This document shows, in pieces, positions 1,431 to 45,934 of a DNA stretch of 64,000 nucleotides; position 1 is the stretch's first letter, and each line of letters starts with the position of its first letter. The position numbers and the translations under genes are program-made. The stretch is taken from NCBI RefSeq assembly GCF_039654945.1, contig NW_027361869.1:7626001-7690000 (forward strand). The letters run 5' to 3'. The DNA is from Dendrobates tinctorius (lineage: Eukaryota). Under the pieces are notes generated by a model that worked only from the letters and a program-made list of their open reading frames with translations, was not told the DNA's origin and searched no databases.

Positions 1431-1551
1431 ATGTGTCCACTGTCCACAAGTGTGTGCAGAATTTCTAAATCTCCCCTGTCCTATAGACACCTTTTACCTT
1501 GTTTTACATTACTATATAGTTTGTTGGATTTTGTCTACATTTCTACCAAAA

Positions 1552-4500
1552 ATGAGGAAGGCTGGTGGAAGAGGCCGTGGAATTGGGCGGGGGTTGGCAG
1601 CTGGTAATGATGGTGTTGGTGTTGGATCTGATGGTAGTGGCAAGAGCAAAATAGGACCGAATGCAGGAGGTGCTGACCCTGCGTCATCGTCTGGCTACAT
1701 AAGGCCTCGAACGCTTAGTTTTCTAGGAGTTGGCAAACCGCTTTTAAAGGCAGAGCATCAGGAAAAAGTTTTGTCTTACATTGCTGACTCAGCCTCCAGC
1801 TCTATCGCCTCCTCTTCTTCAGTTGTAAAAAGTAAAAGCACTGAGTCGTCATTGGAGGCTCATGTTCATGAACCACACCTTTCCTTGTGTCCTTCACCCC
1901 AACCAAGATTGAAGGATGACGTAGGCCATACTACTGATTACTCCATGGAGCTGTTTTCACATACCATGCCTGAATTATCAAGTCAAATGGTGAATTACCC
2001 AGGCCAAGATGAATCTGACATGGAGTGCACTGATGCACAGCCGCTGATGGATGATTCTGCTGGTACATTCACTCAGAGCACTACATTGTCCTCGCAATGT
2101 ACAGAGCCAGATTTTGACCCTGATGAGACTCAGGTGCCCCTTCCCGCACACTATACCACCATACACGGTGACACAGAGAAAGGTGCACATGACATAGAAG
2201 AGGAGGTGATGGATGACCCAGTTGTTGACCCAGATTGGCATCCATTGGGGGAAGAGGGTGCTGCTTCCAATAGCTCAGATGAGGAGCATCCACAGCAGAC
2301 ATCGACATCGCAACAGCTGTTATCTGGCAGGCCCGGAGCACTCCAAAGACAGGTTCCAAACATCAAAAGAGTTGCTGGACAGCTTGTCCAGAGGGTCAAA
2401 AGATCACAGCGTGCTAGGCCGCAAAATGTCTGCCAAAGTAGGAAGAGTGCAGTGTGGCACTTTTTTGAACAAAATCCTCATGATCAGGCCAAGGTTATCT
2501 GTAAGAAGTGCGCAAAGACCTTTAGCCGAGGGAAAAATCTGAAAAATTTGAATACCAGTTGCATGCTTAGACATTTAACCAGCATGCACTTGCAAGCGTG
2601 GACACAACACCAAACCTCAAGTGCCACATGTGCAACTGATCACAACGAAGGTAGTCAGCAACGCTACATTGTTTCCCCCACTGTAAGCCCACCGGTTAGC
2701 ACAGCAGCAAATGTTGAGGTGTCGTTGCAAGGCCACAGCAGTCAGGGAATCCCACTGTTATATCAACGAAAGACTGATTCTAGGCCATCAGAAAGAACAC
2801 CAACTCCATCACCATCATCAACCCTCTCTCAGTCCGCCCTGTCCACCGCTACTTCCACCATATGCAGCTCTCAAGTCCAGCTCACCCTCCCAGACACTAT
2901 GAGTAGGTCAAGAAAGTACTCAGTCTCTCATCCGCGTACACTGGGTTTGAACGCCCACATTGCCAAACTAATCTCGTTTGAGATGATGCCCTTTCGGTTG
3001 GTGGAAAGCACAGCTTTCCGCGAACTCATGGCCTATGCAGTACCACGCTATGACCTACCCAGTCGCCACTTCTTCTCTCGCAAAGCCATCCCAGCCCTCC
3101 ACCATCATGTGAAAGACCGCATTGTCCATGCACTCAAGCAGTCAGTGAGCGGAAAGGTGCACCTCACAACTGATGCATGGTCCAGTCGGCATGGCCAGGG
3201 CCGTTACGTGTCCATCACTGCGCACTGGGTTAATGTGGTGGATGCAGGGTCCACAGGGGACAGCGGTGGTGGGACAGTGCTGCCTAGCCCACGGTATAGG
3301 AAACAGTTGGCTGTAGGCGTTCGACCCTCCTCCTCCTCCTCCTCCAGAAGCGAAAGCTCGTCCACAGAGCGCAGTCGTACGAGCACTCCATCTGCAGCTG
3401 CCACTGTTGCACACGATGTGTCCCCCTATCGAGCAGCTAGTGGAAAGCGTCAGCAGGCTGTGTTGCAGATGGTGTGTTTGGGCGACAGACACACCGCCGA
3501 GGTGCTGGCCGAGTACTTGAAGCGACAAACTGAGTCATGGCTGGGCAGTGTACATCTTGAGGCAGGCAAGGTAGTTAGTGATAACGGACGTAATTTTGTG
3601 GCAGGCATAGCCCTTTCAAAACTCAGCCACATACCTTGCTTGGCTCACACCTTGAACCTGGTGGTGCAGTGCTTCCTCAAAAATTATCCGGAGTTAACAG
3701 CCCTGCTCCAGAAGGTGCGAAGACTGTGCGCGCACATCCGCCGGTCGCCTGTACACTCCGTTCGTATGCAGAAGCTGCAGCGATTGCTCCACCTTCCCAA
3801 CCACCGCCTCATTATCGACATTGCAACAAGGTGGAACTCCTCCCTGCACATGGTGGAGCGGCTGTGCGAGCAGAGGCAGGCCATAATGCATTTGTGGGAG
3901 GATACACGGCCAGGCACTTTGAGAGCAGACATGGAGTTGACAGGTGTGCAGTGGTCGAAGCTGAAAGACCTTTGTAAAGTCCTTCAGTATTTTGAGGAAT
4001 GCACACGGCTGGTAAGCGCAGACGACGCCATCCTAAGCATGAGCATCCCACTTATGCGTCTGCTCATGCAAACTTTGACGCACCTTAAGGAGCAGGCGTC
4101 TGCAGCCAATGTTGATGAGGAGGAAGAGGAGGAGGGAATCCTTGATGACATTCAGCCATTGTCTGCTCAGGGACCTCTCCTGGACGAGGTGGAGGAAGAA
4201 GAGGAGGAGGAGGAGGATGATGGGGATGATTACTTAGGGGAGGAGGATGCATCTCGTGGGGCAAGTGAAAATGTTGGCGTGGCAAGGTCTGGTAGAGGGT
4301 TTGTGCGTGACTGGAGGGATGTGGATTTGCCAGAAAGTGCTCCTCCACCCAGCACTCGCAGTGCATCATTGACAACGGGAACATTGGCCCACATGTCAGA
4401 TTATGCCTTGCAGATCCTAAAAAGGGACCCCCGCATTGCCAAAATGATGAACGATGACGACTACTGGTTGGCCAGCATCCTGGATCCACGCTATAAAGGC

Positions 4501-5091
4501 AAATTACAAAACATCATGCCACAGGAGAACCTTGACCTAATATTGGCTAATAAACAAGCAACTCTGGTAAATCGGTTGCTTGAGGCATTCCCAGCACACA
4601 GCAGCGGTGATGGTTCTCACACGAGCCGTACGGGCCGGGGGCAGCTTGGCAGAGGTGTTCGTGGTGCACACAGCAGAAGTGGCGTTGGAGACAGGGGTTT
4701 CATGACAATGTTGTGGACTGATTTTTCAAATACCGCTCACACAACTGGTAATACTGCATCGATGGAAAGTGACAGGAGACAGCAGTTGTCAACTATGGTT
4801 ACAAACTACTTTTCCTCCCATATCGATGTTCTCCCACACAGGTCATTCCCCTTTGACTATTGGGCCGCTAAACTGGACACCTGGCCTGAATTGGCCCAAT
4901 ATGCCTTACAGGAGCTCGCTTGCCCAGCTGCAAGTGTGCTATCGGAAAGAGTCTTCAGTGCAGCTGGATCAATCCTGACAGAAAAAAGGACCTGTCTGTC
5001 AACCCAAAATGTGGATGATCTAACCTTCATTAAAATGAACCACGCATGGGTTTCCAAGGATTTTGTCCCACCTTCCCCTGATGACACATAG
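1552..5091 (+). CDS. hAT transposase with BED zinc finger (ZBED-like), ~1179 aa from the likely ATG at 1552
   Basis: BED finger SAVWHFF...CKKC...LRHLTSMH; catalytic LTTDAW and VVSDNG; CLAH (CxxH); TRWNS; C-terminal dimerisation motif CPAASVLSERVFSAAG. The ORF-track extension to 1174 is just the 133-bp repeat. Confidence 0.93.
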   Translation: MRKAGGRGRGIGRGLAAGNDGVGVGSDGSGKSKIGPNAGGADPASSSGYIRPRTLSFLGVGKPLLKAEHQEKVLSYIADSASSSIASSSSVVKSKSTESSLEAHVHEPHLSLCPSPQPRLKDDVGHTTDYSMELFSHTMPELSSQMVNYPGQDESDMECTDAQPLMDDSAGTFTQSTTLSSQCTEPDFDPDETQVPLPAHYTTIHGDTEKGAHDIEEEVMDDPVVDPDWHPLGEEGAASNSSDEEHPQQTSTSQQLLSGRPGALQRQVPNIKRVAGQLVQRVKRSQRARPQNVCQSRKSAVWHFFEQNPHDQAKVICKKCAKTFSRGKNLKNLNTSCMLRHLTSMHLQAWTQHQTSSATCATDHNEGSQQRYIVSPTVSPPVSTAANVEVSLQGHSSQGIPLLYQRKTDSRPSERTPTPSPSSTLSQSALSTATSTICSSQVQLTLPDTMSRSRKYSVSHPRTLGLNAHIAKLISFEMMPFRLVESTAFRELMAYAVPRYDLPSRHFFSRKAIPALHHHVKDRIVHALKQSVSGKVHLTTDAWSSRHGQGRYVSITAHWVNVVDAGSTGDSGGGTVLPSPRYRKQLAVGVRPSSSSSSRSESSSTERSRTSTPSAAATVAHDVSPYRAASGKRQQAVLQMVCLGDRHTAEVLAEYLKRQTESWLGSVHLEAGKVVSDNGRNFVAGIALSKLSHIPCLAHTLNLVVQCFLKNYPELTALLQKVRRLCAHIRRSPVHSVRMQKLQRLLHLPNHRLIIDIATRWNSSLHMVERLCEQRQAIMHLWEDTRPGTLRADMELTGVQWSKLKDLCKVLQYFEECTRLVSADDAILSMSIPLMRLLMQTLTHLKEQASAANVDEEEEEEGILDDIQPLSAQGPLLDEVEEEEEEEEDDGDDYLGEEDASRGASENVGVARSGRGFVRDWRDVDLPESAPPPSTRSASLTTGTLAHMSDYALQILKRDPRIAKMMNDDDYWLASILDPRYKGKLQNIMPQENLDLILANKQATLVNRLLEAFPAHSSGDGSHTSRTGRGQLGRGVRGAHSRSGVGDRGFMTMLWTDFSNTAHTTGNTASMESDRRQQLSTMVTNYFSSHIDVLPHRSFPFDYWAAKLDTWPELAQYALQELACPAASVLSERVFSAAGSILTEKRTCLSTQNVDDLTFIKMNHAWVSKDFVPPSPDDT

Positions 5092-5298
5092 GGTGACAGA
5101 AAAATGGCTTGCTTTGATCCACCTCTTCCTGGTACTTCACCTATTTCGCCTTTTGCATCAGCTGAATGTCCAACATCAACATATGCCACTTTCTAAAACT
5201 CCCTAACTGTGCTGCCTCCCCCCCATGGCCGGGGTCACCACCTACCGCATGACACCGTGCGAGTGCCGTTGCCCTGGACAGGTGGGTAGGCCGACTCT

Positions 5299-5420
5299 TG
5301 GGCGCGGGCACTGGCACAGGGTCCCTCATAGTGCAATCAAGTGTCTCTGACGGTGGTGGTGCACACCCGCCGTCAGACACACCGCTGTACTATGAGGGGC
5401 CCAGTGCCAGTACCGACGCC
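5299..5420. repeat. Imperfect inverted repeat (hairpin) in the hAT 3' region
   Basis: GGCACTGGCACAGGGTCCCTCATAGTGCA...TCTGACGGT / CCGTCAGA...TGTACTATGAGGGGCCCAGTGCC are reverse-complementary arms. Confidence 0.8.
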
Positions 5421-5507
5421 CACGAGTGGGCCCCCCTTGCTTGGGCAGGGCCCCAGCATTTGCAATCTTTACCTCTCCCTGCTCCTCCGCTGTGTAATCT
5501 GGGCCGT

Positions 5508-5892
5508 CAAATCCATACTGTGCCTGACACGGTCTGAGCCTGCCTCCTGAGACAAATATTTTGAATGTGTACGCTATCCATACATGTTATCCGGGGATAC
5601 GGTACCCTTTCTAACCTTTGTGCAATCACGTGCAATCCATACTGTGCCTGACACCGTCTGAGCCTGCCTCCTGAGACATATATTTTGAATGTGTACGCTA
5701 TCCATACATGTTATCCAGGGATACGGTACCCTTTCTAACCTTTGTGCAATCACGTGCAATCCATACTGTGCCTGACACCGTCTGAGCCTGCCTCCTGAGA
5801 CATATATTTTGAATGTGTACGCTATCCATACATGTTATCCAGGGATACGGTACCCTTTCTAACCTTTGTGCAATCACGTGCAATCCATACTG
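5508..5892. repeat. 124-bp tandem repeat (~3 copies) inside the hAT element
   Basis: AATCCATACTGTGCCTGACAC...GTGCAATCACGTGC is repeated with a 124-bp period. Confidence 0.93.
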
Positions 5893-6742
5893 GGCGTGAG
5901 AACGGCTGGCGAGCTGTTAAGCAAGCTACAGCACCTGTCCAGACAAGTACAGGGATTCCCTAGCGAGGAGACTTATTTGATTGTTTTCAATGTTGGGACA
6001 GCAATTTTTGGGGAGCACTATACTCTGGAGAATGATAGATGGGGCCCACCATACACTGGAACATTCCAAAGGTGGACATCAGACACTGGAGCAGCATTTA
6101 CAGGGCCCATTATACACTAGAGCATTAGAAATGGGGCCCATTATGTTTGGAGCATTATTTGGGCCCATAAGACAGTGGAGCTTCATCCATGGGGACCAAC
6201 ATATACTGTAGCATTATGTGGAGCTCATCATATACTGTTTCAAACATTATATGGGACCAATGATTCTGTATGGAGAAATAGATGGGCCTCGTCATGAGAT
6301 GTAAAAAGTGAGGTATTTTTTATTGTACTATACCGCTATTTATCTGCCGTATCGGAGCATGATGAGTTGTGGTTTGTGTTAAAGGGGCACTCTTTCGCCC
6401 AGGGCACATGAAAACCTGCAGCCAGCCCTCCCCCCCCCACAACTTTAGCCAAATAACCCCCATTTTTCATTGCGTAACTTATATTATGAAGTTAATTAAG
6501 GTTGACAAGCTTAAGTAAGAAGAATTGATGCTTTTGGCATTCAAATGGGCCCTGTAGGTGTGTTTCCTGTCCTCCTCTCACTGCCGACTTTTATTCCTCA
6601 TTGACTTACATTGGGTTTCGTGTTTCGGGACGACCCCGACTTTTCCCTATAATCGGACGATCTTGCTCGACCCGACATTTGGAAAAGTCGGGTTTCACGA
6701 AACGAAACGCGACCCTAAAAAACCAAAAGTCGCTCAACTCTA

Positions 6743-7310
6743 GTACCAACACCTTGTCGCCGCAGAGGTGTATGATCAGTGCCACCACCTCCTCTCTGCA
6801 GAGCTGTATGATAAGTGCCACCACCTGGTCCTTGCAGAGCTGTATGATCAGTACCAACACCTTGTCCCCGCAGAGCTGTATGATCAGTGCCACCACCTTG
6901 TCGCCGCAGAGGTGTATTATCAGTGTCACCACCTTGTCCCCGCAGAGCTGTATGATCAGTGCCACCACCTCCTCCCTTCAGAGCTGTATGATCAGTGCCA
7001 CCACCTCCTCTCTGCAGAGCTGTATGATCAGTACCACCACCTTGTCGCCGCATTGGTGTATTATCAGTGTCACCACCTTGTCCCCGCAGAGCTGTATGAT
7101 CAGTGCCACCACCTGGTCCTTGCAGAGCTGTGTGATCTGTGCCACAACCTCATCCCTGCAGAGCTGCATGATCAGTGCCACCATCTTATCCACACAGAGC
7201 TGTATGATCAATGCCACCACCTACTCCCTGCAGAGCTGTATGATCAGTGCCACCACATCATCCCTGCAGAGCTTTATGATCAGTGCCACCACCTCATCCC
7301 TATACAGCTG
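6743..7310 (+). repeat. 36-bp histone-3'-end-like satellite, array A
   Basis: Tandem CAGTGCCACCACC(N10)CAGAGCTGTATGAT units. Confidence 0.95.
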
Positions 7311-8160
7311 TGCTCTGTGTAGAAATTGGATTTTGTGTCTCCTCTTTTCTCCCAATATTCCCCTTTTGCACAATAGTTGGGTCACATAAATCCAGGAATA
7401 TCTCACAGTTTTCTCCCCGGAGATGCGTCTGGTTGGGGAGTGAGTCGCATTATGAAGCTGCCCCTTATCAGTTCTCTTCCACCATTACAGGCCTCAGGGG
7501 TCACAGCTCCACAATGGGTGAGACCAGATTTTAGCAGGTCATTGCAATCAGCCGCCCATGTGGATCATCTCCTGATGTGGAGCATCTGTCACCCCCAATA
7601 CTCCGCACATACGGGGTACAGGGAGGTCACAGGTCAGGGAGGCGGCAGTCAGCGGAGCCATCGCCTGTGTTACCCTTCTGGGCTCTCAGCAGCTCCAGGT
7701 CGTCCCCACATCGTACAATCAGCGTCCTGTACGATAGACATTGTAGTAAAGATCCCTGTGATGGTGACAGGAGCCGGGAACAGGAGGAACGAGTTCCCCC
7801 AGCAGATGTATCTTCCCGGATACACAGCGATGTGCAGATCTGGAGGACGACGGCGATGATCCCGGGACCTCCTCTCCGCTCTTCCCCGGCGTCTCTGCTA
7901 GTGACAGCTACAGACGGTCGGTGGAGAAGATGGCGAAGAAGAAGCGGCGGAGGAAGCGCGCTCTGCTGTCCGGTGTCAGCCGGTAAAGGGCTTTTATTCC
8001 GGGCAGGGAAGCACAAGGGGAGAGCGGAGCTTCACTCGTTCTCAGCTGGGAAGAGGCGGGGCATGTATGCAGTGTCAGCCAATAGATGCTCAGGACGTTG
8101 TAGCTCAGCAGCCAATCAGTGCACAGTAAGCCTGTACATATAACAGACGCCTCCGGCTCC
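7240..8160 (+). repeat. Direct duplicate of the H1 upstream/promoter region (copy of ~12108-13030) with no H1 CDS behind it
   Basis: Near-identical to 12108-13030; matching ORFs 7377/12244 and 7577/12444. Diverges at 8161, just after CTCCGGCTCC. Confidence 0.93.
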
Positions 8161-9530
8161 GACGGTGCAGTTTTATCTAGAGATTATGCTGGAGTCTTCA
8201 CTGTAAAGGGAAGCGGTGACGACATTTTAGAAGCAGCGGGAAATTCAAACCCCCTAACCGGCCTGTGTTCAGCCAATCCGCAGAGGGAGGGGAGGAGCTA
8301 ATGTTCCCAATGGTTGACACGTTTGCAGTTCCCGCTTTTTCTGTTCTTTGTCTCCATATAACGCGCGGTCCCAGGACGGAGCGATGTCGGGGAATCTGCA
8401 GGTGTTGAGAGGTCGCTGGTCGCTTACATCCCATACAGGAGTCTGCAGCTGTTCCTGGTTAGAGAATGAATCCGCGTTAGGCAGATGCTGTGATGCCCCG
8501 TGTGTCTGACCTGCAGGCGATCACATCTCCCTTTCTCGTCATAATCAGTATTGTGGAGACAATATATTGGCTAGAGATGTATCCTACAAGAGACATTTCA
8601 GGGGAGACCAATTCTGCTCTTCCAAGCAGATCCCACCTGCAGCTCCAGGCAGGAGGTCTGTGATGGGAAATGTGCGATCATGTAGAGAAGATTGCCGAGA
8701 GCTCAGTGCACAATACATTACACTGTGATGTGAGGATCCTCTAGGTCAGACATGTCATGACATCATCTCCCATCACATCCTCCTCACAGATGTTTTTTAA
8801 ATAATTACTGCAGGATATGGGGCGATATTGGCGGCTGGGATCAGTCAGGATCACTGCTGAGCTCTGATTTTCAGCCTTTTCTGTCATTATGTTAATAATT
8901 GTTTTTCCTAATTAATTGTAGCTGACAGCAGGTCCCTACTCTGCAGCAATGTGAGCTATGATGTGGTGGAAAAAAGAATCATTGCCAGGGGAAGAAGAAA
9001 ACACAAATATAAGGACAATAGTGTCATAATTGCCCGAAGTAATGATGACTCCTATCATAGCACAAATGTCCCTAATGCGGGAATATAAGACCTGAATAAA
9101 GGCAGAGAGGGCTTAGCCCTGGGGTTAATATAAATGTAATATTCTCTATGAAAACCGGAGATCCTGTGATTACTGAGGACTGAGCCTTATATCAGGCAGT
9201 GTATCTACCGGTGTGAGATCCCCTGGGCGGCTGCCTGTAATATCTGTGGTTACAGTCTGTTCTGTCCTCCTGACATATACTGGGGCCGTGTCTGCTCCCC
9301 TCTATTTGTGCTGCCCATTTATCTATAGGCTGAATCTGGAATAATTCTCATCACAGGGGAAGAAGTGACATTATATTACAAGCTGGAAAGAAAAGGGAAA
9401 CTGAACAATGAGCGGGAAATTCAAACTCTCCAACAGTTCTGTGCTCAGCCAAACAGCAGAGGAAGGGAGGAGCTCATGTGGATTCTGTAAGCCCCGCCCT
9501 GGGGCGCGTCATCTCTGCAGTTCTCTCTCT

Positions 9531-9553
9531 GGTCCGTCTCTCCTGTATATAAA
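9531..9553 (+). promoter_or_regulatory. H4 promoter: GGTCCG H4-subtype element and TATA box
   Basis: GGTCCG at 9531, TATATAAA at ~9546, GC box at ~9492, upstream of the H4 ATG. Confidence 0.7.
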
Positions 9554-9574
9554 GGAGGGGTCGTTCTGTTTTAG

Positions 9575-9913
<339 letters not shown>

Positions 9914-9943
9914 TTGTATTCTTTTCTGTGCTGATAACCCAAA

Positions 9944-9959
9944 GGCTCTTTTCAGAGCC
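9944..9959 (+). terminator. Histone 3' stem-loop (H4)
   Basis: GGCTCTTTTCAGAGCC followed by ACCCA and a purine-rich HDE (GAGAGGCT). Confidence 0.96.
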
Positions 9960-11631
9960 ACCCACATCTTCTACCTGAGAGGCTACGATTTCCTATTCCT
10001 GCATTCTGGTGCCTGTAAGTATACTAGTTGTCACAGCCTGGCATGTGTCTTGCACTTTCCTCCTTCCATACTGGAGCTGGCACCGCGGACTTGGGGTGAT
10101 GTGGTTTATTCTCCTTGATCTATAATATACAGCTGCCAGGTTCTGGGGGCATACAGTATATCCGCACTGTGCAGCACAGACATCTCTGCACCACAGTACA
10201 TACCTCGCTGTGATGTGGTCACTACAGAGCAGAAATCCAAGTTCTGCCGTGAGATGAACGTGATTCTGCTACAGGTCTTCCTGATCAGATCAGTGTGTGT
10301 GTCAGGAGGCAGCGAATACTCCCGGGGATTGTCGCTGGATAGATGCGCCTCCCCCAAAGGCTCCTATCAGAGCCGCCCACATGTGTTCTGGAGAAGCTAC
10401 AATTCCTGATATTTGATGACTGCGGTGATGGAGTCTGGTCAGATCCTATTTCTCAGGATTGGTGTAAATCCAGTGAGGAGCGGTCACATCCTGTACCGGT
10501 AACTGCTCCCCCTTGTTAGTGGCGGCTCCCCGGTATGTCCAGCGCCTGCATCTCATCACTACCACCCTCCTCATTTACCATCTACATGTGGCCACTGATT
10601 GTGACCTCCTGACTGCTCCTAATAACATGGACTGGAGCTACAGCCGGCAGCGGTCTCCTGTGCTCGGGCTGATGGATGAAGCCGCTCCCTCCCCGCAGCC
10701 GGACATTAGCGGCTCGTTCCCCTCATGACGGGGAGGTTTCTGGTGTCTTATCCTATTTATCAGTAGTCGGAGCCAGAAGAGAGAACAGAGTCCGCACCCC
10801 GAATGTACAGCGCCGTCATCCGAGCCCGGCGGACCATAGCGAGGACTGGAGATGAGGCGGCTCCGGAGCCTGTGTATTTCTGAGTGCGGAGAGCGCCATC
10901 CCTCCAGAGGAGAAAAAGTCTCGCATACAAGATAACTGCATAAATGTGGTTGGTGAGATAATGAGCAGCGGCCACCGTTCTGGGGATTGAGGGGTTAATA
11001 CAATCTCACTTTACCACACGATCTGCAGGTATAATGGCCGCTTACTCCTGACAGTGATTGGGAAATGATGTCTCTTCCACAAGCAGAGAACAGTCACTGA
11101 AGGGTTAATGATCGAGGGCCGAGAGCACGACTGAGCGGGAGATTCAAACCATCAAACGGTTATAAAGCTCCGCCCACAGGAACCGACCAATCGATAGACG
11201 TGCTTCCTCCTCCGTTTAACTCCTTATTGCCCTTCTACCTGCTGCTCCTCATGTACACGTGTTCTCCCGGCAGCGCTCAGCACATCGGGCTCCTCCTGGT
11301 AGAACATGTGCGGATTGTATCATCCGATCTGTGCTAGATGCGGCCTCCTGTGATCAGTGCGGACCCCACACGGAGACGCCCAGATATAACGTTACCGGGT
11401 CTCCGTGTGGGGTCCGCTCCGATCACTGCTGGAAGTGGAGTTGAGACTGATCAGCCCTGGAGCTGCAGGCAATGTATACACACCCCGTACGGTGCTGCAC
11501 ATCCTCCATACCACCTACTGGGTGGTATACAGCACTACAAAGCCTACGTGTGCTGTATACTCCCCATCTAGTGCTGCAGACACAAATCCGAGAGCATCTG
11601 TTCTATATAAGCCTGAATCATGGAATGTTCC

Positions 11632-11805
11632 AGCTCAGTGCAAGATTCATTAAATCCTCCCAGACGGATGTCTGTCCAGCCTCTGTTTGAAGACTTCCAT
11701 TGAAGGAGAACTCAACACCTCCAGTGGCAGCCTGTTCCACTTATTGATCATCCTCACTGTCAAAAAGTTCTCTTTAATATCTAATCCGTGTCTCCTCCCA
11801 TTCAG
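11632..11805 (-). mobile_element. CR1 LINE 3' fragment (inverted copy of 16276-16449)
   Basis: Similar to the end of CR1 ORF2 at ~27420-27590 (GAGTTCTCCTTCAATGGAAGTCTTCAAACAGAGGCTGGACAGAC). Confidence 0.85.
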
Positions 11806-11955
11806 AATCATCTACAGAATACCCCCATATAGTGCTGTAAACCCCAAATAGCTATTGTATGTATAGGCTCACATAGTGCTGGATACCCTCCATATAGTGA
11901 CATGAGCATAAGGTAGTGCTGATACCTACATATTGCTGAATACTCTGCACAAAGT

Positions 11956-12176
11956 GCTGTATGATCAGTGCCACCACCTCCTCTCTGCAGAGCTGTATGA
12001 TCAGTACCACCACCTTGTCGCCGCAGAGCTGTATGATCAGTGCCACAACCTCATCCCTGCAGAGCTGTATGATCAGTGCCACCACCTCGTCCCTGCACAC
12101 CTGTCTCATCAGTGCCACCACATCATCCCTGCAGAGCTTTATGATCAGTGCCACCACCTCATCCCTATACAGCTGT
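11956..12176 (+). repeat. 36-bp satellite, array B
   Basis: About 6 units; joined to the inverted-duplication arm at GCTGT. Confidence 0.93.
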
Positions 12177-12919
12177 GCTCTGTGTGTAGAAATTGCATTT
12201 TGTGTCTCCTCTTTTCTCCCAATATTCCCCTTTTGCACAATAGTTGGGTCACATAAATCCAGGAATATCTCACAGTTTTCTCCCCGGAGATGCGTCTGGT
12301 TGGGGAGTGAGTCGCATTATGAAGCTGCCCCTTATCAGTTCTCTTCCACCATTACAGGCCTCAGCGGTCACAGCTCCACAATGGGTGAGACCAGATTTTA
12401 GCAGGTCATTGCAATCAGCCGCCGATGTGGATCATCTCCTGATGTGGAGCATCTGTCACCCCCAATACTCCGCACATACGGGGTACAGGGAGGTCACAGG
12501 TCAGGGAGGCGGCAGTCAGCGGAGCCATCGCCTGTGTTACCCTTCTGGGCTCTCAGCAGCTCCAGGTCGTCCCCACATCGTACAATCAGCGTCCTGTACG
12601 ATAGACATTGTAGTAAAGATCCCTGTGATGGTGACAGGAGCCGGGAACAGGAGGAACGAGTTCCCCCAGCAGATGTATCTTCCCGGATACACAGCGATGT
12701 GCAGATCTGGAGGACGACGGCGATGATCCCGGGACCTCCTCTCCGCTCTTCCCCGGCGTCTCTGCTAGTGACAGCTACAGACGGTCGGTGGAGAAGATGG
12801 CGAAGAAGAAGAAGCGGCGGAGGAAGCGCGCTCTGCTGTCCGGTGTCAGCCGGTAAAGGGCTTTTATTCCGGGCAGGGAAGCACAAGGGGAGAGCGGAGC
12901 TTCACTCGTTCGCAGCTGG

Positions 12920-13015
12920 GAAGAGGCGGGGCATGTATGCAGTGTCAGCCAATAGATGCTCAGGACGGTGTAGCTCAGCAGCCAATCAGTGCACAGTAAG
13001 CCTGTACATGTAACA
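12920..13015 (+). promoter_or_regulatory. H1 promoter (GC box, two CCAAT boxes, TATA-like TGTAA)
   Basis: GAGGCGGGG at ~12922, GCCAAT at 12948 and 12981, TACATGTAA at ~13005. Confidence 0.65.
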
Positions 13016-13084
13016 GACGCCTCCGGCTCCGGCCTTAGTGTTTTCCTATCGGGAGATTTTTGTGTTTTGGCTCCGTAGCACAGG

Positions 13085-13702
13085 ATGGCAGAGACCGCGC
13101 CAGCCGCCGCTCCCCCTCCCGCAGAACCGGCTGCCAAGTCCAAGAAGCAGCCAAAGAAATCCGCCGCCAAGAGCAGCAAGAAATCCTCCGGTCCTGGCGT
13201 CTCCGAGCTGATCGTGAAAGCCGTGTCAGCCTCTAAGGAGCGCAGTGGGGTGTCTCTGGCCGCCCTGAAGAAGGCGCTGTCTGCCGGAGGGTACGATGTA
13301 GAGAAGAACAACAGCCGCCTGAAGCTGGCCGTCAGGTCTCTGGTCACCAAGGGCACCCTCCTCCAGGTGAAGGGCAGCGGCGCCTCCGGGTCCTTCAAAC
13401 TCAACAAGAAGCAGGAGACTAAAGTGGCCAAGAAGTCAGCAGCCAAGCCCAAGAAACCCGTTGCTGCTAAGAAAGCCGCCAAATCTCCGAAGAAGCCCAA
13501 GAAGGCTCTGACCACGGCCAAGAAGAGCCCGAAAAAGGCCAAGAAGCCCGCAGCTGCCAAGAAAGCGGCCAAGAGCCCCAAGAAGTCGAAAGCCGCTCCC
13601 AAGCCTAAGAAGGCGACGAAGAGTCCGGCTAAAAAGGCGGCCAAACCTAAAGCTGCCAAGAGTCCGGCTAAGAAAGCCAAGAAGCCCGCGGCCAAGAAAT
13701 AA
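13085..13702 (+). CDS. H1: Linker histone H1 (somatic, replication-dependent)
   Basis: [12 protein letters not shown]-terminus; globular domain [30 protein letters not shown]...[10 protein letters not shown]; Lys/Ala/Pro tail with SPKK motifs; stem-loop. Confidence 0.98.
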
Positions 13703-13729
13703 GTTGCGGACCCAGTTCTTTTACACAAA

Positions 13730-13745
13730 GGCTCTTTTCAGAGCC
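13730..13745 (+). terminator. Histone 3' stem-loop (H1); HDE AGAGCTGTA at 13762-13770
   Basis: GGCTCTTTTCAGAGCC-ACCAC-CCTGTCCCCGC-AGAGCTGTA. Confidence 0.96.
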
Positions 13746-14141
13746 ACCACCCTGTCCCCGCAGAGCTGTATGATCGGTGCCACCACCCTGTCCTCGTAGA
13801 GCTGTATGATCGGTGCCACCACCCTGTCCCCGCAGAGCTGTATGATCAGTGCCACCACCCTGTCCCCGCAGAGCTGTATGATCTGAGCCACCACCCTGTC
13901 CTCGTAGAGCTGTATGATCAGTGCCACCACCCTGTCCCCGCAGAGCTGTATGATCAGTGCCTCCACCTCCTCCCCGCAGAGCTGTATGATCAGTGCCTCC
14001 ACCTCCTCCCCGCAGAGCTGTATGATCAGTGCCACCACCCTGTCCCCGCAGAGCTGTATGATCAGTGCCTCCACCTCCTCCCCGCAGAGCTGTATGATCA
14101 GTGCCTCCACCTCCTCCCCGCAGAGCTGTATGATCGGTGCC
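13739..14141 (+). repeat. 36-bp satellite, array C (~11 units), starting inside the H1 stem-loop
   Basis: The first unit is CAGAGCCACCACCCTGTCCCCGCAGAGCTGTATGAT, i.e. the H1 processing signal itself. Confidence 0.96.
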
Positions 14142-14451
14142 TTCAGGTGACAGTTCTGTGTAATGGAGGGAAGGGGCCGATGTGCAGCAGAAATCACGTT
14201 ACTTCCATCATCCTAATTATCACCACCTGTAACCCACATCTTAGTAAGAGTGGTGTGAGGTTATAACTCCGATGTGAGAGTTGGAGCGTCAGTGACTGAT
14301 TATAGAGGAGCTGCTGTACCGCTCTGGGTACTGGGAATATAGAATCGGAGCTTCCGCTGTAGAAGCCGCCTGGAGATTGGATGTGACCCTGTGTATCAGA
14401 GCAGTGGGTGATAGCTGAACTGTGAGTCAGGTTGAGCCTTCTCTGTACAGT

Positions 14452-15024
<573 letters not shown>

Positions 15025-15055
15025 ATCTGTCCTGCCCACCTGACTGCAACACAAA

Positions 15056-15071
15056 GGCTCTTTTCAGAGCC
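15056..15071 (+). terminator. Histone 3' stem-loop (H3)
   Basis: GGCTCTTTTCAGAGCC-ACCCA, with HDE AAGAAGAGC downstream. Confidence 0.96.
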
Positions 15072-17314: not shown

Positions 17315-17737
<423 letters not shown>

Positions 17738-19519
17738 TTACAGAATCCACATGAGCTCCTCCCTTCCTCTGCTGTTTGGCTGAGCACAGAACTGTTGGAG
17801 AGTTTGAATTTCCCGCTCATTGTTCAGTTTCCCTTTTCTTTCCAGCTTGTAATATAATGTCACTTCTTCCCCTGTGATGAGAATTATTCCAGATTCAGCC
17901 TATAGATAAATGGGCAGCACAAATAGAGGGGAGCAGACACGGCCCCAGTATATGTCAGGAGGACAGAACAGACTGTAACCACAGATATTACAGGCAGCCG
18001 CCCAGGGGATCTCACACCGGTAGATACACTGCCTGATATAAGGCTCAGTCCTCAGTAATCACAGGATCTCCGGTTTTCATAGAGAATATTACATTTATAT
18101 TAACCCCAGGGCTAAGCCCTCTCTGCCTTTATTCAGGTCTTATATTCCCGCATTAGGGACATTTGTGCTATGATAGGAGTCATCATTACTTCGGGCAATT
18201 ATGACACTATTGTCCTTATATTTGTGTTTTCTTCTTCCCCTGGCAATGATTCTTTTTTCCACCACATCATAGCTCACATTGCTGCAGAGTAGGGACCTGC
18301 TGTCAGCTACAATTAATTAGGAAAAACAATTATTAACATAATGACAGAAAAGGCTGAAAATCAGAGCTCAGCAGTGATCCTGACTGATCCCAGCCGCCAA
18401 TATCGCCCCATATCCTGCAGTAATTATTTAAAAAACATCTGTGAGGAGGATGTGATGGGAGATGATGTCATGACATGTCTGACCTAGAGGATCCTCACAT
18501 CACAGTGTAATGTATTGTGCACTGAGCTCTCGGCAATCTTCTCTACATGATCGCACATTTCCCATCACAGACCTCCTGCCTGGAGCTGCAGGTGGGATCT
18601 GCTTAGAAGAGCAGAATTGGTCTCCCCTGAAATGTCTCTTGTAGGATACATCTCTAGCCAATATATTGTCTCCACAATACTGATTATGACGAGAAAGGGA
18701 GATGTGATCGCCTGCAGGTCAGACACACGGGGCATCACAGCATCTGCCTAACGCGGATTCATTCTCTAACCAGGAACAGCTGCAGACTCCTGTATGGGAT
18801 GTAAGCGACCAGCGACCTCTCAACACCTGCAGATTCCCCGACATCGCTCCGTCCTGGGACCGCGCGTTATATGGAGACAAAGAACAGAAAAAGCGGGAAC
18901 TGCAAACGTGTCAACCATTGGGAACATTAGCTCCTCCCCTCCCTCTGCGGATTGGCTGAACACAGGACGGTTAGGGGGTTTGAATTTCCCGCTGCTTCTA
19001 AAATGTCGTCACCGCTTCCCTTTACAGTGAAGACTCCAGCATAATCTCTAGATAAAACTGCACCGACTACAAATGTCTCCTGTTATTTGAGGAAAAACAC
19101 GAGAATCATGAACTAAGTGCAGAGAGGAAAATCGTCAGCTCACTGTCTGGTGCTGCATGGGGGAGAAAATTCAGTCTCAAAGCATCCCGGCTTAGAAAGT
19201 GTTATTAGTCATCATGGTGTATCATGAACTAAACCGAATCATGTTATACCAAATGAATGAGACCCCAGAATATCAAGATCTGTGGAGCAAGGGGTTAAAG
19301 AGTAGTCCCTGAACACAGAGCAACTTATGGAGAAGTGACCAGGTTATTATTTAGAAGGTCCTCGGTTCTCACAATCTCCTTGGTAGCATTCATCATCCCT
19401 ACTTCCTTCACCTGTCACTTCCCGTCACTAGACGCAGAGACCCAGGCGGTGGAGCAGACAACTCGGGGAGACGGGAAAGGACACAGGAGCAGCCACAGCT
19501 CTGATGGAGATGGGGTGGT

Positions 19520-19535
19520 GGCTCTTAGAAGAGCC
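19520..19535 (-). terminator. Histone 3' stem-loop (H2B)
   Basis: GGCTCTTCTAAGAGCC-ACCAC-CCCATCTCCAT-CAGAGCTGT on the - strand. Confidence 0.95.
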
Positions 19536-19569: not shown

Positions 19570-20657
<1,088 letters not shown>

Positions 20658-20690: not shown

Positions 20691-20706
20691 GGCTCTTCTA
20701 AGAGCC
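20691..20706 (+). terminator. Histone 3' stem-loop (H2A)
   Basis: GGCTCTTCTAAGAGCC-ACCCA...CAAGAGCTG. Confidence 0.95.
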
Positions 20707-21753
20707 ACCCACACCGTCGCCACAAGAGCTGACGCCGCTGATCTCTGCGTGCTCACATGGGACTGACGTTAGACACCACGGGCTGCCGCCACCAGTTTGT
20801 AGGTTGGTGCCCATACACACTTGATTCCGGGGTTCAACACAAAACACTGAGGATGCCCATGTCTGGGTTATCACATGAAGCCTCAGACCTGTGTGGGGAG
20901 AGGAGTCCTCGAATAGTCACAGGAAATGTCCCTCATTAGTGAATGTCTTGATACTCGGGCCCCTGACTCCGCTGTGGAGATTACATGCGGTTATCACGTC
21001 CCGGAGTATCGGGGGATGGCGGCCGGTGATTGTCCACATCAGTGACTGCTGCTCCTCCCGGAGGGCGATCCCGTGATGGCGGCTCTGGAGGGCCGGACTC
21101 TGCGCGGTTCTCTGTGTGACCGGATTGTGATGTCCGCTAATAATCCTCGGCGGAAGAAGAGCGGGAAGTTCAAATCCCCAAACGGATCCTGCGATCAGAC
21201 AATGAGCGGGAATCCTCGGTTAAGCGCCGCCCTCAGCCTTCAGTGATGTACATAGACGCCTTTCCTCCTCTGTTTAACCTCTTACTTGCCTTGTTCCTGC
21301 TGATCCCCTCTTATTTACCAGTGTTCACAGATGCGCCACCTTCATCTCACATCGGGCTCCTCGAGAACATCTGCTGCTTATAGCCCCCTGTAATCAGTGC
21401 AGAAACAGCTGGGAGTCCCGATAATACTGTAAGTGACTGAGGAGATTGCGGCACGTGCAGATCGAGCTAATTGCCATCATTGGTGAAAAGTCCTAGAGCT
21501 ACACAGCGGGTTAACCCCACATTAGTGTAGTGTAATTATCCGCAGGTTCACTGAACAAATATTATGTAACAGAAGAAAATTAATGAAGCCAATAAACCAC
21601 AAATCCTCCTGCTTTTCTGTAATTACTAAAAAAAAAAGCACAGATGAAAGCCTATGTACTAATGGGGGAGCGTGATAGGCGACGCGCTGGTTCCAGCATC
21701 AATGTGCTCTCCATCCGCATGCCATACTCCATACCCCGTCCCCCATTTTTGGC

Positions 21754-23277
21754 CTGTATGATCAGTGCCACCACTTCACCCCTGCAGAGTTCTATAATGA
21801 GTGCCACCACCTCGTCCCTGCTGACCTGTATGTTCAGTGCCACCACCTTTTCCCTGCAGACCTGTATGTTCAGTGCCACCACCTTTACATGCAGAGCTGT
21901 ATGATCAGTGCCACCACCTTTTCGCCGCAGAACTGTATAATCAGTGCCACCACATTGTCAACGCAAGCTGTATGATCAGTGCCACCGCCTACTCCTTGCA
22001 GAGCTGTATGATCAGTGCCACCACCTAATCCCTGCAGAGCTTTTTGATCAGTGCCACCACGTCATCCCCTCAGGGCTACCTGATTAGTGCCACCACCTTG
22101 TACACGCAAAGCTGTCTGATCAGTGCCACCACCTTGTCCACGAAAAGTTGTATGATCAGTGCCACCACCTCGTCTCTGCAGACCTGTATGATCAGTGCCA
22201 CTACATCATCCCTGCAGAGCTTTATGATCAGTACCACCATCTTGTCCCAGCAGAGCTGTACGATCAGTGCCACCACCTATTCCCTGCAGAGCTGTATGAT
22301 CAGTGCCACCACCTCCTCCCTGCAGAGCTGTATGATCAGTGCCACAACCTCATCCCTGCAAACCAGTATGTTTAGTGCCACAACCTCCTCCCTGTAGAGC
22401 TGTCTGATCAGTGCCACCACCTTGTCCGCGCTGAGCTGTATGTTCAATAACACCACCTTTTCCCTGCAGACCTGTGTGATCAGTGCCTCCAACTTATACC
22501 TTAAGAGATGTATAATCAGTGCAAACACATTGTCCCCGCAAAGCTGTATGATCAGTGCCACCACCTGGTCCTTGCAGAGCTGTATGATCAGTACCACCAC
22601 CTTATCGCCGCAGAGGTGTATGATCAGTGTCACCACCTTGTCAATGCAGAGCTGTATGATCAGTGCCACCACCTTGTCCCTGCAGGTCTGTAGGATCTGT
22701 GCCACTACCTCATCCCTGCAAAGCTGTATAATCAGTGCCACCACCTCCTCTCTGCAGAGCTGTATGATCTGTGCCACTACCTCATTCCTGAAGAGCTGTA
22801 TGATCAGTGCCACCACCTCCTCCCTGAAGAGCTGTATGATCAGTGCCACCACTTCCTCCCCGCAGAACTGTATGATCAGTGCCACCACCTCATCCCTACA
22901 GAGCTGTAAGATCAGTGACACAACCTTGTCCCTGCAGAGCCTTATGATCAGTGCCACCGCCTCCTCCCCACAGAGCTGTATGATCAGTGCAACCACCTCA
23001 TCACTGCAGAGCTGTATCTTCAGTGCCACCACCTCATCCCTGCAGAGCTGTATGATCAGTGCCACTACCTCATCACTGCAAACAAGTATGTTCAGTGCCA
23101 CCACCTCCTCCCTGTAGAGCTGTCTGATTAGTACCACCACCTTGTCCACGCTGAGCTGTATGTTCAGTGCCACCACCTTTTCCCTGCAGAGCTGTATGTT
23201 CAGCACCACCACCTCCTCCCTGCAGAGCTGTATTATCAGTACCACCACCCTGTCCCCGCAGAGTTGTATGATCAGTG
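21754..23277 (+). repeat. 36-bp satellite, array D
   Basis: About 42 diverged units. Confidence 0.95.
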
Positions 23278-23703
23278 GTGGCATTTATGCACATGTAATC
23301 GAAGTACATGCATCAAAGTACTACTGTCAGTTATAGCATGGCAGTTAGACAGGGCAGGAGACAGGTAAGACATTTATATACATCTACTCCCTGTACATTT
23401 GGAGCACATCTCCAGGGGAAGAGTCTTGAGGAGATCATTTGCATATTCCCAGTGCCTCCTGGGATAAGTGAAGAGTCTCCGCGAGCTCAACGATCACTGG
23501 GTTTTGGCCGTTGCAGCTGAAAAAAGGAAATCGGAAAACCAGGGGAAGAGTCTTGAGGAGATCATTTGCATATTCCCAGTCCCTTCTGGGATAAGTGAAG
23601 AGTCTCCGCGAGCTCAACGATCACTGGGTTTTGGCCGTTGCAGCTGAAAAGAGGAAATCGGAAAATTTTGGCTCATCTTTCATCGTTTTTAAGAAATCTC
23701 AAG

Positions 23704-24666
23704 ATGGAAGAGGCCAGGAGCCATTTGGTGAGCTGCATTTCTTGCTACATGTTCACAGATTTACCAGTGGAAAAGCCAAACTTCACATGCCACAAATGCA
23801 AGCTTGTGTCCCTGTTGGAGGAAAAGTTGCAAAATCTCGAAGAGAGGTTAGCTACGTTGAAGATCATTAAGGAAGGTGAAGAGTTCTTGGACAGAGCAGA
23901 ATTATCTCTTCATGTTACAGAAAGAGAAGAAATTCGAAGTGCACCTGAAGAAACAGAGGAATGGAGACATGTAACCCAGAGAAGCAGGAGGATCAGGAGG
24001 CAGTCAGCACCCATACTGCTCAGAAACCAGTACCAGGCTCTCACGCAGGAAAACGATGAAGAAATACATCAGGATAAGACTTTGCCAACAAACAGCAACC
24101 TTGTACGCCTTCAGAGTCCTCTTGGATGGAGAAAGAAAAATGTTGTGAAGAAGAAACGGAGAGTGGTGGTCATGGGGGATTCCCTGTTGAGAGGAACAGA
24201 GGCCGCTATCTGCAGACCGGATATAACTTCAAGAGAAATGTGCTGTCTTCCAGGTGCAAAAATTAAAGATGTGTCTGACAGGATATCAGGACTCTTCAGA
24301 CCTACAGATGACTACCCATTCCTGCTACTACATGTGGGGACAAATGACACCGCAAGAAACGACCTGGAAACCATCTGCAGAGACTTTGAAGACTTAGGCA
24401 AGAAAGTGAAAGAACTGGGAGCGCAGGTGGTCTTCTCTTCCATCCTCCCAGTGGATGGCCATGGAACAAGGAGGTGGAATAAGATTCTGCAGGTGAACAA
24501 CTGGCTACGTCGATGGTGCCGTCAGAAACGATTTAGATTTCTGGATCACGGAGTGAACTACTTATACAATGGACTACTTGCTAGAGATGGGGTGCACCTT
24601 ACGAAGACTGGAAAGCATGTATTTGGAAGTCGCCTTGCTACACTTGTAAGGAGAGCTTTAAACTAG
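23704..24666 (+). CDS. CR1 ORF1: zinc finger/coiled coil plus SGNH (GDSL) esterase
   Basis: CISC...CHKC; VVVMGDSLLRG, CCLPGA, LHVGTND, DGVHL. Start probably MEEARS at 23704. Confidence 0.9.
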   Translation: MEEARSHLVSCISCYMFTDLPVEKPNFTCHKCKLVSLLEEKLQNLEERLATLKIIKEGEEFLDRAELSLHVTEREEIRSAPEETEEWRHVTQRSRRIRRQSAPILLRNQYQALTQENDEEIHQDKTLPTNSNLVRLQSPLGWRKKNVVKKKRRVVVMGDSLLRGTEAAICRPDITSREMCCLPGAKIKDVSDRISGLFRPTDDYPFLLLHVGTNDTARNDLETICRDFEDLGKKVKELGAQVVFSSILPVDGHGTRRWNKILQVNNWLRRWCRQKRFRFLDHGVNYLYNGLLARDGVHLTKTGKHVFGSRLATLVRRALN

Positions 24667-24845
24667 AACAACATGGGAAGGGAAGCAAAAGACCAGAAAA
24701 AGCCATACATCTGACAAATGCTATTGAGAACTCTGCTATTAGAAGTTAAAAGGAAGAACAAAGACAAAAGAATCTAATTAATAAAAATATTGGAGAAAGA
24801 GAAACCAATCACAAACTAAAATGTTTCTATACTAATGCACAAAGC

Positions 24846-27578
24846 ATGGGCAACAAACAAGGAGAATTGGAACTACTAACACAGGAAAAGAAATATGATG
24901 TCATTGGAATTACTGAAACTTGGTGGGACAATACACATGATTGGAATACAAGACTAGAAGGATACAACTTATTTGCAAGAAACAGACTTGATAAACGAGG
25001 AGGGGGTGTCGCATTGTATGTTAGAAACGCGTATATCTGCACAGAGATTGAAGCTTCAGAGACTGGGAGTTCTGTGGAAACTGTTTGGGTAAGAATACAA
25101 GGACAGAACAATGGAAAGGACACCATTGTAGGCATTTACTACAGGCTGCCTGTGCAAGCTGAAGATATGGATGAACTCTTTATGCATCAAATGGCCAAGT
25201 TCTCCAAAAAATATGACATAGTTGTCATGGGAGATTTCAACTATCCAGACATTTGTTGGGAATCTCTCTCAGGCAAAACTAACAGGTCAAGGAAATTCTT
25301 ATCCTCTCTTGCTGACAACTTTATCTTCCAAAAGGTAAGGGAGAAAACAAGGGGATCTGCTACCTTGGATCTAATCCTTATAAACAGGGAGGAAATGGTT
25401 GAGGAGGTAATAGTGGCTGGGACCCTAGGAGGTAGCGACCATGCTATTTTAGAATTTTGGATAACTAGAGGCGGAAGACCTGTGAAGACTCAGACGTCAA
25501 GGTTAGATTTCAGAAAGGCAGATTTTAAGGGATTCAGAAAGAGAATTGGAGGGATCCAATGGCTGGATATCCTTAAAGACAAAAATGTCCAGGAAGGATG
25601 GGAAATCTTGAAAAATGAAATTCTCAAAGCACAGTTGTTAACAATTCCGAAAAGAGGGAAGAATAGGAAGCATTTAAGGAAACCAGGATGGATGAACACA
25701 GAACTTAAGCACATGCTAAAAAGGAAGAAAAAAATGTTTATAAAATGGAAAGAGGGAGGCATATCTAAAGAAGAATATAATGCTGTCTGCAGAACCTGCA
25801 GGGCACAAATCAGATTAGCTAAAGCTGAAAATGAATTGAGGCTTGCAAGAGATGTCAAAAGCAATAATAAAGGATTTTGGGGATATGTCAAAAGTAAAAG
25901 AAAAGTCAAAGATGCTATAGGATTTTTACAGGATGAAAATGATGAAATGGTAAGACAGGATGTTGAGAAGGCTGAACTTTTAAATTCCTATTTTGCATCT
26001 GTTTTCTCACAGAAAGGAAATGTAACATCAACTGTTATTCATTGTCCTATTAAGGGAATAGAAGAATCCAGGATATCTATAAACAGAAAGATAGTGAGGA
26101 AACACTTAGCTAACCTAAATGAATTCAAGTCTCCAGGTCCAGATGAATTACACCCCAGAGTACTGAAGGAGATAGCAGAAGAAATTTTTGAACCCCTCTC
26201 CATAATCTTTGAAAATTCTTGGAGAACAGGAGAAGTACCAGAAGACTGGAGAAGAGCAAATGTTGTTCCTATCTTCAAAAAGGGGAAGAAGGTGGACCCA
26301 GGCAACTATAGGCCAGTGAGTCTGACTTCTATACCAGGAAAGATATTTGAACAAATTATTAAACAACATGTATGTCAATACCTGGATAAGAATGAAGTGA
26401 TTAAACAGAGTCAACATGGGTTTGTAACTAATAAGTCATGTCAGACTAACTTAATTTCCTTCTATGACGGTATCACTGATTGGGTGGATCAATGAAATGC
26501 TGTAGATATAGTATATCTTGACTTCAGCAAAGCATTTGACAAAGTCTCTCATACAATCCTTATTGAAAAAATGACTAAGTATGGAATGGACAAGGCAACT
26601 GTTAGGTGGATTCATAACTGGCTTAGTGATCGGACCCAAAGAGTGGTCATAAATGGCTGCACATCCAGTTGGAAGAATGTCTCAAGTGGGGTACCACAGG
26701 GCTCTGTCCTGGGCCCTGTATTGTTCAACATCTTTATCAACGATTTAGATGAAGGAATTGAGGGTAAACTGATTAAATTTGCTGATGACACAAAGCTAGG
26801 AGGGATAGCTAATACTAGAGAAGAGAGAGAGAGGATTCAAAAAGATTTAAATAAACTGGAGAAGTGGGCAGCAACTAACAGAATGGTTTTTAACAGGGAG
26901 AAATGCAAAGTACTACATCTGGGCAATAAAAATGAAAAAAGCATATATAGAATGGCAGGAATAGGGCTAAGTGACAGCACATGTGAAAAAGACTTGGGTA
27001 TACTAATAGATCACAGACTGAATATGAGTCAACAGTGTGATGCAGCAGCAAAAAAGGCAAATGCAATTCTAGGATGTATTAACAGAAGCATACAGTCTAG
27101 ATCACGTGAAGTCATTATTTCCCTCTACTCCTCTTTGGTCAGACCTCATCTGGAATATTGTGTCCAGTTTTGGGCACCACATTTTAAAAAAGACATCAAC
27201 AAACTGGAGCAAGTTCAGAAAAGAGCGACCAGAATGATGACCGGTCTGCAAACCCTGTCTTATGAGGAAAGGTTGCAGGATTTAGGAATGTTTAGTTTGC
27301 AAAAGAGAAGACTGAGAGGAGACTTAATAGCTGTCTACAAATATCTAAAGGGCTGTCACATTGTAGAAGGATCAACTTTATTCTCATTTGCACAAGGAAA
27401 GACTAGAAGCAATGGGATGAAACTGAATGGGAGGAGACACAGATTAGATATTAGAAAAAACTTTTTGACAGTTAGAGTGATCAATGAGTGGAACAGGCTG
27501 CCACGAGAAGTGGTGAGTTCTCCTTCAATGGAAGTCTTCAAACAGAGGCTGGACAGACATCTGACTGGGATGATTTAG
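24846..27578 (+). pseudogene. CR1 ORF2 (APE endonuclease + reverse transcriptase) with an in-frame stop at 26493-26495
   Basis: ITETWW, MGDFN, SDH, KSPGPD, NYRPVSLTS, then VDQ* followed in frame by [19 protein letters not shown] and KFADDTKL. Confidence 0.93.
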
Positions 27579-43373: not shown

Positions 43374-43383
43374 CGGAGCCTCA

Positions 43384-45775: not shown

Positions 45776-45934
<159 letters not shown>

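Follow-up and report, generated by a model that had tools for sequence, protein, structure and literature searches.

Satellites that derive from genes and satellites that accompany a particular locus are already known. PcP190 of frogs, which derives from 5S rDNA, is an example of gene-derived satellites. The histone clusters of the newt Notophthalmus reportedly lie within satellite 1, with read-through transcripts on lampbrush loops, as Stephenson et al. and Diaz et al. are said to have described in 1981, Gall et al. (1981) being named as a related reference on newt histone clusters in satellite. The unit of satellite 1 is ~220 bp long, and we know of no report that derives it from a histone processing signal; to our knowledge, histone 3' processing signals are known as one copy per gene and not as a satellite.

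The canonical histone 3' signal consists of a stem-loop, the ACCCA cleavage context and a histone downstream element (HDE) that pairs with U7 (PMC7026596). U7-containing spheres, now histone locus bodies, associate with amphibian histone loci, and the read-through context of the newt histone satellite is given in the same work (PMC12046345).

In this study, the stretch of 64,000 nucleotides from Dendrobates tinctorius (the window) was analysed as a whole. It holds a 36-bp satellite which, as we see it, quite likely arose by tandem amplification of the 3' processing region of a replication-dependent histone gene, H1 being the most likely source; it would then have spread through the locus and be neutral in its bulk. 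As in the newt, an amphibian histone quintet is set apart by tens of kilobases of locus-associated satellite; newt satellite 1 is reportedly transcribed on lampbrush loops, whereas the satellite here is known from DNA. PcP190 was likewise born from a fragment of a tandem housekeeping gene unit and is common to related anurans, but its donor is a structural RNA gene, while the donor here would be a 36-nt signal for RNA processing that lies 3' of a gene, and this satellite has so far been met nowhere but within histone clusters and beside them. Histone locus bodies gather U7 snRNP at histone loci, and the repeats bear motifs predicted to be complementary to U7 at just such a locus, although these bodies form without this satellite, which is absent from the X. 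tropicalis clusters examined. A literature search returned no description of this satellite, nor of any satellite from a histone downstream element. The donor, a histone mRNA 3' processing signal, is unusually clear. Satellites traceable to their origin at the level of bases are rare, and in this instance the first repeat is presumed to be still in use by the gene.

The histone genes of the window and the elements of their 3' ends that the comparison needs are the following:

9602-9913, + strand, H4 gene
13085-13702, + strand, histone H1 coding sequence, 205 aa (open reading frame; linker-histone homologs in many frogs)
13730-13745, + strand, H1 mRNA 3' stem-loop GGCTCT TTTC AGAGCC, 16 nt (pattern scan, Rfam RF00032)
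13738-13773, + strand, satellite unit 1, with the HDE core AGAGCTGTA at 13762-13770
14614-15024, + strand, H3 gene
17315-17626, - strand, second H4 gene
19488-19535, - strand, H2B stem-loop and tail (ACCAC, spacer, AGAGCTGT)
19570-20037, - strand, H2B gene, with an assembly gap in it
20253-20657, + strand, H2A gene
20691-20731, + strand, H2A stem-loop and tail (ACCCAC, spacer, AAGAGCTG)

GCA_039654945.1 encodes a protein identical to the H1 of the window at 5 places. A pattern scan places a stem-loop 3' of every histone gene in the window, and four of these stem-loops pass the Rfam gathering score, the Histone3 (RF00032) match of H1 at 13725-13771 reaching 35.9 bits (gathering score 34). The stem-loops of H2B (19520-19535, - strand) and H2A (20691-20706, + strand) have the loop TCTA (GGCTCT TCTA AGAGCC) and not TTTC, and they score under the gathering threshold.

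Past the H1 coding sequence, the stem-loop passes seamlessly, with no junction, into an array of the 36-bp repeat (13738-14141, + strand; 11.2 copies with 92% matches by TRF), whose phase starts inside the stem-loop, at the last two bases of the loop. Each monomer runs in the order last two loop bases, 3' stem arm, ACCAC, 11-nt spacer, AGAGCTGTA and 3 nt; unit 1 reads TCAGAGCC-ACCAC-CCTGTCCCCGC-AGAGCTGTA-TGA, and the consensus is TCAGTGCCACCACCTCGTCCCTGCAGAGCTGTATGA. Later units vary chiefly in the first eight bases and the spacer, carrying CAGTGCC, CGGTGCC or CTGAGCC, and the array stops mid-unit against the H3 upstream region. The layout that the initial annotation had given for the stem-loop, unit 1 and the later units was found to be as described in the sequence, by TRF and in Rfam, and the H2B and H2A tails that it quoted are correct and have the same architecture as the monomer.

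The repeat has a cleavage context of the ACCCA type: unit 1 shows ACCAC behind GCC, and 42% of monomers keep an intact GCCACCAC; ACCAC is also found in the H2B tail of the window and in the X. tropicalis H1 tail. A stem-loop recognised by RF00032 exists for unit 1 only, where the H1 gene provides the 5' arm. Set against the canonical signal, unit 1 together with this arm has every element in normal order and at normal spacing. Since the array begins within the gene's own stem-loop, unit 1 would provide the cleavage site and HDE of H1, and it is probably, judging by its sequence, the working 3' processing signal of that gene.

For the pairing of the HDE with U7, the 5' region AGUGUUACAGCUCUUUUAG, common to human and mouse U7 (PMC7026596), served as a mammalian proxy for the U7 of the window's species. 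The predicted duplexes with this proxy are:

Unit 1 and satellite consensus, AGAGCTGTA: 9 bp, -14.0 kcal/mol
H2B element: -18.2 kcal/mol
H2A element: -14.9 kcal/mol
H3 element: -10.6 kcal/mol
H4 element: -9.9 kcal/mol
Background 40-mers: mean -7.8 kcal/mol, 1% tail -15.3 kcal/mol

With the mammalian proxy, the duplex of AGAGCTGTA is thus stronger than those of the H3 and H4 HDEs of the cluster. Duplex energy by itself is not decisive, as -14.0 falls short of the background 1% cut-off of -15.3 kcal/mol, and the argument for U7 therefore rests on position and register. AGAG begins 16 nt past the stem in unit 1 and 17-19 nt past it in the other four classes; because this position is right, unit 1 is a credible working HDE for H1, and the claim of a 9-nt U7 complement at normal spacing holds with the mammalian proxy. 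Even where a stem-loop is present, processing is poor if the U7 duplex has 9 bp (PMC7026596), which speaks against a function of the bulk repeats. Throughout the window, the 9-mer AGAGCTGTA is intact in 172 of 495 monomers and the 8-mer AGAGCTGT in 197 of 495 (35-40%), and by their sequence the repeats could bind U7.

The resemblance between the monomer and histone tails was evaluated by aligning a satellite dimer with the 44 nt that begin in the loop of each histone gene, with p values from 2,000 shuffles:

H2B tail: score 30, p<0.0005
H4 tail: score 22, p 0.001-0.002
H3 tail: score 19, p 0.0085
H2A tail: score 18, p 0.0135

The tails share one register (arm, ACC(C)AC, pyrimidine-rich spacer, AGAG core), and each of the five histone classes in the window has a 3' tail with which the monomer lies in register. 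The score of 30 for the H2B tail exceeds the maximum of 23 among 11,684 background 44-mers taken from the same window outside satellite and tails; this tail, 27/32 identical to the consensus, is the closest independent relative of the monomer. Two histone clusters of Xenopus tropicalis (L004, L005) were used as outgroup, and the 36-bp satellite is absent from both. Their H1, H2A, H2B and H3 tails align in register with the monomer or unit 1 at scores of 17-33, while the H4 tail aligns poorly. Given this match to the tails of the window and of Xenopus, the monomer is a histone tail by its sequence and not merely by its adjacency to H1; it is homologous to a defined gene segment beyond chance, as expected of a gene-derived satellite. 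The proposal of the initial annotation that the satellite derives from a histone 3' end is thus borne out by the seamless junction and by the in-register tails of the cluster and of X. tropicalis, and we regard such an origin, as read from the sequence, as well supported.

Between H3 and H1 of one X. tropicalis cluster (L005, 8301-8756) there is a 41-bp tandem repeat of 11 copies (95%), which was ruled out as a relative of the monomer (p 0.29 and 0.88).

The satellite is by no means limited to the H1 flank. Some 495 monomers with at most 12 mismatches to the consensus, all on the + strand, were mapped in ten arrays between 6742 and 62963; the ~500 co-oriented monomers make up 18-20 kb, or about a third of the window. 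They form head-to-tail arrays, the largest of 15.7 kb, with periods of 36, 72 and 108 bp (TRF), as satellite DNA does. Beside the array at H1, the map comprises:

6742-7301, + strand, array of ~16 units that ends at a duplicate of the H1 upstream region (TRF)
11956-12166, + strand, array of ~6 units directly 5' of the H1 promoter region (TRF)
21754-23277, + strand, array of ~42 units, 1 kb past H2A, beginning at a recurrent boundary block (TRF)
31226-32482, + strand, array of ~35 units, beginning right behind the (ATT)n tail of an inserted LINE (TRF)
45488-62963, + strand, giant domain with 72- and 108-bp higher-order periods (TRF, monomer map)
45488-45787, 45989-46132, 46383-62065, 62266-62411 and 62658-62963, + strand, component arrays of the giant domain
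62066-62212, + strand, H3 relic inside the satellite (C-terminal codons, 3' UTR, truncated stem-loop), 96.6% identical to 14921-15067

The satellite surrounds the histone quintet and reaches at least 40 kb past it within the window. It is interrupted by hAT, LINE, ERV-like and Ty3/Gypsy elements inserted into it, and the giant domain is broken up by transposon fragments and H3 relics. The H3 relic at 62066-62212 is fused to the boundary block that also begins the arrays at 21754 and 45989, which shows that cluster copies have collapsed inside the satellite. The array at H1 is the more homogeneous one, with 92% matches against 68-79% in the giant arrays (TRF).

As for its birth, the copied segment would have comprised the last two loop bases, the 3' stem arm, ACCAC, the spacer, the U7-complementary HDE and 3 nt. 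Slippage or unequal exchange between the TCAG-G of the loop and a similar motif just past the HDE is a possibility for the first step. Past its HDE, the X. tropicalis H1 tail reads GTAATATAGTG, which aligns with GTATGATCAGTG of the monomer, and an ancestral TCAG-G-like motif 36 nt past the TCAGAG of the loop might, as a weak inference, have offered the microhomology for the first duplication; with such a motif, the T that stands in place of A at position 5 in 97% of monomers would be explained. Unequal exchange and segmental duplication may then have enlarged the array and carried it across the histone locus, with a histone quintet amid co-oriented repeats as the outcome. If so, the locus is a clean case of the birth of a satellite, its spread through a multigene locus and the decay of a motif once freed from selection.

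Which histone class donated the segment is a separate question. Among the tails of the window, loop-derived TCAG and ACCAC occur together in the H1 tail alone, as they do in the monomer: TCAG is found in H1, H3 and H4 and TAAG in H2A and H2B, while ACCAC is found in H1 and H2B and ACCCA in H3, H4 and H2A. A second species (organism B, a DNA-like run) has an H1 coding sequence at 90-95% identity, and a contig of depth 112 begins at ~13672, takes in the 3' UTR and stem-loop and reaches at least as far as 13764, so the junction of stem-loop and unit 1 is common to both species. In organism B, satellite bins reach a depth of 4,800-12,400 compared with 140-550 for H1, and, counting organism B, at least two species beside that of the window have the satellite at high depth. 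The shared junction, together with satellite in another species, indicates that the link between H1 and the satellite is older than the window's species.

Could another class, H2B- or H2A-like, have been the donor, the repeat having later replaced the H1 downstream sequence via recombination or gene conversion at GCC-ACCAC, so that the H1 junction is secondary? The H2B tail of the window, with its 27/32 identity to the consensus, also has the strongest U7 duplex, and in X. tropicalis the H2A and H2B tails equal or surpass the H1 tail in their alignment with the monomer, H2A having the top score against unit 1. The homogeneity of the H1-proximal array (92% vs 68-79%) would likewise suit a recent arrival; that array is young and homogenised, and unit 1 could therefore have been overwritten from the array and not be its source. 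Against this, TCAG and ACCAC are paired in H1 only, H2A and H2B having TAAG, ACCAC is present in the X. tropicalis H1 as well, the junction of stem-loop and unit 1 is kept in the second species, and neither the H2B nor the H2A stem-loop of this window is adjoined by an array. We therefore hold a donor of another class to be rather unlikely. The initial annotation's 'probably H1' stands as far as the TCAG/ACCAC combination and the junction in the second species carry it, although the X. tropicalis tails do not single out H1; that H1 specifically was the donor is likely and the most parsimonious reading of these sequences.

Other sources were of less use in this regard. The translated satellite ORF, used as a protein query to find the repeat in other assemblies, returned no match, and gene callers probably skip such ORFs; the H1 of Pristimantis lies at a contig end, without a 3' flank for comparison; and two Logan H1 contigs, which look like fish H1 genes with AT-rich flanks, were set aside as uninformative.

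Taking H1 as the likely donor, we turn to what has become of the copies. What monomers retain of the canonical signal is its 3' arm, cleavage context and HDE core, but the internal ones have no 5' arm, number ~500 in 64 kb and have mostly decayed HDEs. Bulk monomers without the 5' stem arm have no SLBP site: a permissive Rfam scan of 13700-14200 found no second Histone3 match beyond unit 1, and four internal monomers fold no better than shuffles (z +1.35), in agreement with the loss of the 5' arm and SLBP site that had been put forward earlier. The exact stem arm is indeed present in distant units at 48482, 56009 and 59100, as had been reported, but only 5 of 495 monomers carry TCAGAGCC, and these three are copies of one higher-order-repeat variant with a decayed HDE (CTGAGCTATA). 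Being one duplicated variant, they are not independent relics, and a reading of the rare TCAGAGCC monomers as relics of the stem arm was discarded as weak.

Conservation was compared between the parts of the monomer (arm 0.93, ACCAC 0.90, non-CpG spacer sites 0.89, HDE core 0.88, linker 0.87), and the HDE core is conserved no better than other non-CpG positions. An intact AGAGCTGT is kept by 40% of monomers where 36% are expected under independent decay at each site, and the changes at the most variable sites (16, 17 and 22) are of the CpG-decay type (CG to TG or CA). It can be inferred that bulk monomers evolve like neutral methylated satellite DNA, and that the remaining U7 complementarity is inherited sequence and not a maintained function. 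The units next to H1 differ to some extent: all 11 keep the 12-nt AGAGCTGTATGA and thus AGAGCTGTA, with the eight variable sites all elsewhere (p ~0.02 in a small, non-independent sample), while the 9-mer is kept in 32% of giant-array units. Local constraint may account for the intact HDE of these units, or recent homogenisation alone.

That the bulk repeats have a function is conceivable yet unsupported. Such a function would have read-through or oocyte (lampbrush) transcripts present hundreds of U7-complementary sites, and these sites could gather U7 snRNP in the histone locus body, be a sponge for it, or provide fail-safe cleavage or termination past H1 and H2A. All monomers are sense-oriented downstream of H1 and H2A on the + strand, ~170-200 of them retain 8-9 nt complementary to U7 and match the real H3 and H4 elements in strength, and the HDE is kept in all 11 H1-proximal units, but the HDE core is conserved no better than its non-CpG neighbours and is gone from 60-65% of monomers. 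In amphibian oocytes, the spheres (histone locus bodies) that sit at histone loci do contain U7 snRNP (PMC12046345). RNA-labelled runs of two other species show some satellite depth: in a third species it amounts to 450-1,345, above that of H1, which makes satellite transcription somewhere in the group possible, and in a fourth the depth of H1 is up to 22,900 and falls to 21-137 over the units, these depths being those of assembler contigs, in which DNA carry-over is possible and which are not a measure of expression. The drop past the H1 coding sequence in the fourth species could reflect processing close to the stem-loop. In RNA runs of the window's own species, at most 1% of the words from a pure satellite stretch are found, which speaks against a function, and one such run yielded one low-depth H1 contig only. 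On balance, functional arrays seem improbable to us, and we find it just as doubtful that transcripts of the co-oriented arrays, made for instance in oocytes or as read-through from H1 and H2A, draw U7 snRNP to the histone locus or buffer it there through their hundreds of complementary sites. If it were true, a DNA-encoded histone-locus-body scaffold or fail-safe terminator would have evolved from the processing signal itself; the locus offers a natural test of whether arrays of U7 sites affect U7 snRNP localisation or histone-locus-body assembly in amphibians.

It is hardly credible, finally, that the resemblance to histone tails is coincidental and that an unrelated satellite or transposon-borne minisatellite invaded the cluster and cut the H1 3' flank behind the stem-loop: histone clusters do get invaded by satellites and transposons, and arrays with varied boundaries abut LINE, hAT and Gypsy fragments, but five independent tails lie in register with the monomer far beyond background, the array phase begins within the loop and not behind it, the consensus was not found in the literature searched, and a transposon-borne origin is ruled out by the lack of common transposon-like termini among the arrays and by the position of the transposons, which sit inserted in them.

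Several smaller features of the window were recorded beside the amplified processing signal. Three arrays are bounded on their left by the recurrent block of ~70 bp (CCAGCATCAATG ... CCCCATTTTTGGC), which lies at 21680-21753, 45915-45988 and 62195-62265; after it, the repeat begins within the HDE (CTGTATGA), and two copies of the block are fused to a truncated H3 stem-loop. Three copies, ~95% identical, of a block of satellite, H3 relic, boundary block and LINE reverse-transcriptase fragment lie at 45706-46400, 53336-53752 and 61981-62675, the middle one without the H3 relic as aligned, and point to segmental duplication inside the giant array. A higher-order repeat of ~360 bp (ten monomers) is found three times in 56524-58047, with near-identical ORF translations.

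Upstream of the quintet, 7088-8185 is a second copy of 11953-13058 (the last satellite units and the H1 upstream and promoter region), 95.6% identical and without an H1 gene after it, and an H4-promoter-like remnant (8235-8304, compared with 9411-9479) lies just after this duplicate; both look like decayed duplicates of cluster modules. Between the satellite arrays there are two LINE-like elements, an ERV-like element and a Ty3/Gypsy element at 23638-30861, 33253-37351 (- strand) and 40363-44559 (- strand), the ERV-like one carrying an env-like ORF and an integrase-bearing ORF. A hAT-like transposon with a 1305-aa ORF at 1174-5091 adjoins the satellite with its end at ~6741, and tandem repeats of 133 bp (11 copies, 98%) and 124 bp (3 copies) are situated at both of its ends, within 1-1474 and 5510-5899.
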